Made by a program: the position numbers and the translations under genes
Part shown: piece after piece, positions 19,075 to 19,301 of the stretch
How positions within the stretch are numbered: position 1 is the first letter of the stretch
How the letters are laid out: each line of letters starts with the position of its first letter
The notes under the pieces: generated by a model
What the model was told of the DNA's origin: nothing
Database searches by the model: none
The model's input: the letters and a program-made list of their open reading frames with translations, nothing else
Origin: Podarcis tiliguerta
Taxonomy: Eukaryota
Length of the DNA stretch: 64,000 bases
Strand: one strand, 5' to 3'
Assembly (NCBI GenBank): GCA_965153285.1
Contig: OZ229114.1

Positions 19075-19191
19075 TCATAAAATGGTGCAGTAATAGAAGT
19101 AACTGGACCAGGAAGAGGAGGCATCTGCCCCAATGATGTCATAGCCGTTAGTGGTAGCTGGGGGGCGGGACTGGTCATGCAGCCTTGTGTC
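19075..19191 (-). other. AMMECR1L: Candidate +1-frame C-terminal extension of AMMECR1L (38 aa, ends in CaaX box CTIL)
   Basis: Open +1 frame directly after UCC-UGA: [38 protein letters not shown]. Confidence 0.55.
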
Positions 19192-19301
19192 AGGAGTAAT
19201 GATTGTAGAGGGGCGGGGCATGAAGAGTGCCATTCTGAAAACAATGCTGACGAGAAGCCATGTATTCTGCATAACTGATTGTCACCTTCTCACTGCGGTA
19301 T
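19190..19301 (-). CDS. AMMECR1L: AMMECR1-like protein, last coding exon
   Basis: [36 protein letters not shown]; six coding exons sum to 933 nt = 310 aa + stop. Confidence 0.96.

Follow-up and report, generated by a model that had tools for sequence, protein, structure and literature searches.

The question raised by the AMMECR1L locus of Podarcis tiliguerta is whether the 114 nt that follow the AMMECR1L stop codon are ordinary 3′ untranslated sequence or a conserved C-terminal tail that is read in the +1 frame. Little is understood about what AMMECR1, the paralog of this gene in the X-linked AMME deletion region, does at the molecular level. In the 64,000-nt stretch of DNA analyzed here (the window), AMMECR1L is an intact gene on the minus strand, the strand on which all features of the gene given below are read. 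Exon 1 (32433-32029) is 98.5% identical to corn-snake AMMECR1L and is followed by small domain exons near 23050, 21950, and 21150, by exon 5 (20231-20135), which encodes 32 residues and whose donor, AG|gtaaat, gives two bases of an Arg codon, and by the last coding exon (19301-19190), which is preceded by the canonical acceptor cttttttctttcag (19315-19302) and in frame 0 encodes this Arg and 36 further residues up to the stop. The protein sequence of the last exon is identical to that of bird and snake AMMECR1L (P0205, P0208). Upstream of AMMECR1L, on the same strand, lie SAP130-like coding exons (45562-49638, minus strand) with proline/alanine-rich and QGIQ-repeat segments, and two copies of an interspersed repeat of SINE-like appearance, about 340 nt each and in opposite orientations (29865-30204 and 42639-42977, 86-94% complementary), bracket the 5′ half of AMMECR1L along with the intergenic stretch toward SAP130. 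Sequencing runs of four organisms hold the whole stretch, and those of several other organisms hold part of it.

The initial annotation placed the end of the 310-aa ORF, CAT TAC TCC TGA, at 19201-19190, and these coordinates are exact on the minus strand. The last sense codon and the stop (TCC at 19195-19193, TGA at 19192-19190) together form the antizyme hexamer, a candidate +1 shift site, and are followed by a C at 19189. UCC-UGA is the +1 shift site of the antizymes, and UGA-C is a weak terminator. When the T of the TGA is skipped, 38 sense codons follow (19191-19078), as had been noted, reading DTRLHDQS, a variable linker, and GYDIIGADASSSWSSYFYYCTIL; they end in TGC ACC ATT TTA (19089-19078), which encodes C-T-I-L, a CaaX box of the geranylgeranyltransferase-I type (X = Leu), and the frame is closed by a TGA at 19077-19075. 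Simple read-through in frame 0 was rejected as a route to this tail, as the next frame-0 stop lies 4 codons on.

Taken from a single genome, the open +1 frame is weak evidence and is not beyond chance. In shuffled versions of the UTR the 38 codons stay open in 15-24% of cases, the +2 frame is likewise open over the tail stretch (ORF 19244-19035), and the +1 frame is also open for 27 codons 5′ of the stop, creating a 65-aa ORF at 19272-19075. Both the level expected by chance and the open +2 frame suit a non-coding explanation, in which the region is an ultraconserved 3′UTR element, such as an RNA structure or a site bound by a protein or microRNA, and in which the +1 frame, the CaaX-like end, and the TCC-TGA are coincidental. 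Against coincidence stands the junction itself, which is exactly a known shift site, and the antizyme hexamer is expected by chance at the end of only about 1% of genes.

The tail rises above chance because it recurs, together with the TCC-TGA-C junction and the CTIL-stop end, in many other vertebrates and in fish AMMECR1. For this comparison, exons were searched singly and the 65-aa +1 ORF was used as a query, which matched six clusters of ORF calls that expand to about 24 distinct peptides; overall, about 27 ORF peptides of other vertebrates carry the AMMECR1L tail, and 25 peptides make up the alignment A1. The roughly 25 distinct +1 peptides comprise a eutherian type, two further sauropsid types, and the divergent P0115. 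They come mostly from anonymous Logan contigs, so that functional genes and retrocopies may be mixed among them, and their number is a biased count of intact tails because an ORF-based search finds only copies in which the frame is open. An unrelated MnmE sequence inside one cluster (P0137) was set aside, as were P0004, P0007, and P0074, which are mis-models or retrocopies. A search of genome contigs and viral contigs with the pattern P-[LP]-Y-N-H-Y-S-stop-C returned no match.

The +1 peptides keep ...PSTIITPD at the junction and ...DASSSWSSYFYYCTIL at their end, with variation mostly before the junction and in the linker. Columns 21-28 of A1 are invariant across its 25 peptides, and 16 of the 19 columns just upstream vary. 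The Pro-Asp dipeptide at the junction is especially informative, since it can be read only from xCC TGA Y, so that the +1 peptides with this dipeptide agree in TCC as the Ser codon, in the TGA stop, and in the base that follows. It is found in all of them, and also in fish AMMECR1, with the exception of the pseudogene-like P0114/P0138, where TCC is absent at the junction. These two peptides, together with P0139, which is divergent too, are probably retrocopies because their frame-0 decoding gives a damaged protein. An invariant TCC-TGA, one of the checks proposed in the initial annotation, is borne out in that TCC TGA C is constant in every apparently functional copy of both paralogs. Two further expectations, that indels would come in multiples of three and that the terminal CaaX box would be conserved, hold for most copies and fail in a few. 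No indel occurs within the 38 codons of the AMMECR1L tails except in P0115, which has a net loss of four codons and stays in frame, and P0116, a single contig, carries a 1-nt indel in a run of C. About 25 AMMECR1L peptides keep CTIL at the end of the ORF, as do P0140/P0141 from fish AMMECR1, the exceptions being P0114/P0138, which read CTIF plus 16 aa, and P0261, which reads CTILWW.

The fish sequences extend the comparison to the paralog. When A1 was used for a profile search, P0140 and P0141 were recovered as well. P0141, from the fish Xenoophorus captivus, is an incomplete GenBank model in which an AMMECR1-type exon (PPMTRDELPRLF...) leads into the last exon read in the +1 frame. When P0141 is decoded in frame 0, it gives ...HHYQNGIGHPLPPYNHYS and a stop; teleost AMMECR1 (P0141, P0140) ends in this frame with ...QNGIGHPLPPYNHYS and a stop, where the junction is TAT TCC TGA C. 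The +1 tail of P0141 is DSEPHDQSLDLSADLFPGEPAPSWSSYFYYCTIL, again closed by a stop, and follows the teleost AMMECR1 arrangement of DSEPHDQS, a linker, and SWSSYFYYCTIL before the stop, with 34 codons in all, four fewer than in AMMECR1L. Fish AMMECR1 and tetrapod AMMECR1L have in common the junction, the D-x3-HDQS motif, the last twelve residues with the stop, and the +1 register, while their linkers are unrelated and differ by four codons in length. Mammals contribute P0143/P0262, a spliced copy of AMMECR1 whose start ATG has become GTG and whose stop TGA has become TGG; over the part that was queried, its domain matches the parent at 100% identity. This is probably a recent retrocopy. With its stop lost, it offers a frame-0 read of the proximal 3′UTR of the parent, in which 24 codons run up to ...FLV and a stop, where AMMECR1L has 28, the same four-codon offset as in fish; its +1 reading contains ..PSWS... 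The A1 profile search recovered no AMMECR1-type tail ORF of mammals or birds, P0261 (the peptide ending in CTILWW) is a close relative of P0140, and the amphioxus and firefly homologs have no tail in frame. The earlier statement that AMMECR1 also ends at TCC TGA with a similar +1 tail is thus right in substance for teleosts (...SWSSYFYYCTIL and a stop) and only hinted at, by the retrocopy, for mammals. Judged from these sequences, the tail is older than the split between AMMECR1 and AMMECR1L. A non-coding element does not readily accommodate this history, given that the +1 frame is kept at linker lengths giving 38, 34, and 34 codons, with the same offset in the mammalian AMMECR1 retrocopy, and that D-x3-HDQS and SWSSYFYYCTIL-stop survive between early-vertebrate paralogs when the linker between them is unrelated.

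At the DNA level, the comparison comprises one real pair, the window and L001, and one reconstructed eutherian sequence. L001 and L002 are host DNA of a second, non-human sauropsid recovered from a metagenome scan; the L001 peptide differs at 3/48 residues from a human TrEMBL entry that served only to recognize and exclude human-identical sequence. The nucleotides of the eutherian tail were rebuilt almost uniquely from two overlapping ORF calls, P0111 in the +1 frame and P0116 in the +2 frame. Between the window and L001, introns do not align and exons are 90-93% identical, and the last exon and 3′UTR align over 630 nt at 82%. The AMMECR1L 3′UTR is conserved to L001 far past the tail (18689-19189 and 16642-17183), the second block being 76% identical over 540 nt. 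Within the 114-nt tail, the two sequences show 11 differences and 0 indels. Read in the +1 frame, 6 of these differences are synonymous and 5 non-synonymous, compared with 4/7 in the +2 frame and 3/8 in frame 0, and the five non-synonymous +1 changes all fall in the linker. The linker takes many amino-acid changes. The +2 frame was rejected as the coding frame, with its 4/7 changes including radical ones inside the conserved block.

The last 23 codons of the tail (69 nt) are more constrained still. Between the window and the eutherian sequence a single base differs here (GGG to GGA), and across the window, L001, and the eutherian, 4/4 changes are synonymous at +1 third positions, which for a frame named beforehand has a probability of (1/3)^4 = 0.012. 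Constraint also reaches back into the main frame, where synonymous sites 5′ of the stop show enhanced conservation that spans 8-15 codons. In the comparison of the window with the reconstructed eutherian, main-frame synonymous differences number 0/15 in the last 15 codons and 5/11 before them, and the 24-nt block CCCTCTACAATCATTACTCCTGAC around the stop (19212-19189) has no variation at its main-frame synonymous sites. A fixed TCC/TGA/C together with frozen synonymous sites 5′ of the stop is the same pattern as is seen at known recoding sites.

Nucleotide conservation at the tail is far stronger than coding requires, and it continues past the end of the ORF. The 37 nt beyond the +1 stop (19074-19038) are 100% identical in L001, which indicates that a nucleotide-level, non-coding constraint also acts at the tail. 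The non-coding explanation draws on this observation, and also on the alignment of the 3′UTR to L001 over both blocks when introns fail to align, and from the single nucleotide that differs between the window and the eutherian in the last 69 nt, far below the main-frame synonymous divergence of 5/11. Facing these points are the four changes in the last 23 codons, all of them at +1 third positions (p about 0.01). In essence, the sequences compared here place the tail under two superimposed constraints, one at the level of nucleotides and one that has the marks of +1 coding. The marks are the phase of the tolerated changes, a frame held through changes of linker length in at least two lineages, motifs kept across anciently split paralogs, and an ORF end that stays on the CaaL box.

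An RNA structure is one form that a nucleotide-level element could take, and a long stem can indeed be drawn: a predicted 16-bp interrupted stem (19059-19138) pairs the tail segment ACGGCUAUGACAUCAU with AUGAUGCUAGC..CCGU across the +1 stop, and the conserved 37 nt are possibly the 3′ arm of such a stem with 19138-19121. Its arms lie at 19138-19121 and 19077-19059, and two one-sided changes in L001 keep the pairing, in a fold that is no better than shuffles. The region has a minimum free energy of -44.7 kcal/mol, where shuffles average -43.2 (z -0.38, from a tool that does not predict pseudoknots), and a stable local RNA structure was rejected on this value. Close to the shift site there is only a 5-bp hairpin, no 3′ stimulatory stem stands out just after the stop, and the two-sequence alignment contains no covariation. 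The failure of the fold to exceed shuffles counts against a structural element as well, and with the codon phase, the paralog motifs, and the junction also against it, we regard a wholly non-coding origin of the conservation as rather unlikely.

The presence of the tail in mammals, in other reptiles or birds, and in fish AMMECR1 makes it quite likely that it is translated by one route or another, and three routes have to be weighed. The first is a separate small ORF, in which the tail would be the C-terminus of a microprotein of 48-65 aa that starts at a +1-frame ATG and is made from a short transcript or by internal initiation. Three such ATGs are present, at 19272-19270, 19233-19231 (in an AGA-ATG-G context), and 19221-19219, which open ORFs of 65, 52, and 48 aa, respectively. 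ATGs are found in all copies seen, the second lies in the AGA-ATG-G context, and synonymous constraint between the window and the eutherian begins at about this second ATG. Moreover, a human TrEMBL entry named 'AMMECR1 like' (UniRef100_A0A8V8THZ2, P0129; Homo sapiens, 48 aa) is exactly the +1 ORF from the third ATG. This entry also qualifies the earlier remark that no annotation of the tail is known: no annotation of the long isoform and no paper on it came up, but the +1 frame is not wholly unannotated, because A0A8V8THZ2 covers the same ORF. The small ORF encounters several difficulties. Counted in codons, the ATGs lie about 0.85-0.9 kb 3′ of the main start, too far to be reached by leaky scanning; L001 has ACG in place of the second ATG, the one with the best context; and between the ATGs and the stop the +1 peptide varies strongly, a single site being R, L, H, or P. 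It also leaves the invariance of TCC, TGA, and C unexplained, and we consider it unlikely to be how the tail is produced.

The second route is alternative splicing, in which exon 5 would be spliced to an internal acceptor, cattgttttcAG (19236-19235), and continue in the +1 frame; the product, an isoform of 326 aa, would be missing 22 residues and carry the CaaX tail. The candidate 3′ splice site, agcattgttttcAG (19248-19235), is located 67 nt into the last exon and has a pyrimidine tract and an AG in the right phase (67 = 3n+1); its CAG is kept in all copies, and AMMECR1 has an AG at the same codon phase. Such an isoform is structurally possible, as the Pfam domain PF01871 ends at residue 280/311 and would be shortened by just 5 residues at its end. 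It must compete with a very strong canonical acceptor 67 nt upstream, however, and in fish AMMECR1 the pyrimidine tract is poor (CACCACTACCAG), while the first residues that splicing would add (MALFMPRP) are unconstrained. The route lacks support because the tail occurs in 0 of the best 119 AMMECR1/AMMECR1L clusters, though other alternative ends (...KLTRAKPKCY...) are annotated there. These 119 clusters range from lamprey and hagfish to mammals and include many RNA-supported X-isoforms and Logan transcript ORFs; their complete members all end in ...HYS or a close variant, and no annotated full-length isoform with the tail was found among them. Alternative 3′ ends of AMMECR1L do exist, as annotated isoforms from several mammals (P0203, P0211, P0232) have the last exon after ...KLTR replaced by AKPKCY...IETCPI or NNHLAVEE, none with the +1 tail. 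Exon skipping into the +1 frame through the canonical acceptor was rejected, since in that frame a TGA lies 6 codons into the exon. Splicing to the internal acceptor is accordingly the least favored of the routes, and we hold it to be improbable.

The third route, and the one we prefer, is programmed +1 frameshifting at UCC-UGA-C, to which we assign a probability of roughly 0.4 on the strength of the sequence comparisons. In this mechanism, the 114 nt after the AMMECR1L stop would be a conserved C-terminal tail in the +1 frame, and a fraction of ribosomes, with UCC in the P site and the poorly terminated UGA-C in the A site, would move one base forward. The shifted ribosomes would then read GAC and go on for 38 codons, producing a proteoform of 348 aa in which the AMMECR1 domain is intact and the cysteine of the CaaL end may be geranylgeranylated; this prenylation, like any control by polyamines, is something that we purely infer. 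Frameshifting needs only a ribosome that has just finished the main ORF. A shift at the stop would account for the constancy of TCC, TGA, and the C after them and for the frozen synonymous sites just 5′ of the stop, and the conserved D-x3-HDQS falls directly after the putative shift.

To our knowledge, extremely few vertebrate nuclear genes use conserved frameshifting. The arrangement at AMMECR1L resembles that of the antizymes OAZ1-3 in that UCC UGA ends the upstream frame and a conserved +1 frame follows with no need of its own start, in the conservation of main-frame synonymous sites 5′ of the site, and in its ancient character. It differs from the antizymes in that the upstream frame of AMMECR1L is a complete functional protein to which the shift would add only 38 residues, whereas antizyme needs the shift for any protein. 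In addition, no 3′ pseudoknot or stem was found at AMMECR1L (with a tool that does not predict pseudoknots), the base after UGA is C where the antizymes have U, and the proteins are unrelated. The CaaL end is comparable to those of GGTase-I substrates (Rho, Rap, G-gamma), with Cys at -4, Ile at a2, and Leu at X, at the ORF end and conserved with the stop, but in contrast to these proteins its bearer would be a nuclear protein with an AMMECR1 domain, and then only if the hypothetical recoded form is made, and a few copies (P0114/P0138, P0261) have lost the terminal position. Beyond the antizymes, conserved +1 frameshifting in vertebrates is otherwise known only, and newly, for PLEKHM2 (PMC11451614), a case that came to light through alignments in which the coding frame changes and through conserved synonymous sites (PMC11451614). 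PLEKHM2 is likewise a nuclear gene conserved in vertebrates, and its +1 shift yields a second proteoform that differs at the C-terminus; the site, CC_UUU_C, lies inside the coding region and is backed by reporters and protein data (PMC11451614), whereas the candidate AMMECR1L site is at the stop. A further parallel is the AMD1 read-through tail, where, as would be the case here, a minority of ribosomes pass the stop and a conserved C-terminal extension arises from the 'UTR' (PMC13025110). Those extensions are in frame 0, whereas in AMMECR1L frame 0 closes after 4 codons and the conserved frame is +1. None of the papers searched connects AMMECR1 or AMMECR1L with frameshifting, an overlapping frame, a Ribo-seq ORF, PhyloCSF, or a CaaX box.

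The fuller proposal, which we put forward tentatively and at lower odds than frameshifting as such, is that AMMECR1 and AMMECR1L constitute a further vertebrate family with conserved programmed +1 frameshifting, one that may use the antizyme hexamer at a natural stop, would be older than the split of the paralogs, and would add a geranylgeranylated tail that sends part of a nuclear protein to membranes. If this is true, the antizyme shift site has been reused at the end of a complete ORF and would represent a general recoding module, and the AMMECR1 proteins might be tied to polyamine or termination status. A lipid-anchored proteoform, if it exists, would redirect the search for the function of AMMECR1, and variants now assigned to the 'UTR' would become interpretable as coding changes. 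Even if the tail is instead reached through splicing or a small ORF, the sequence that is kept between fish AMMECR1 and mammalian AMMECR1L would be coding sequence that is unannotated, bar one 48-aa TrEMBL entry.
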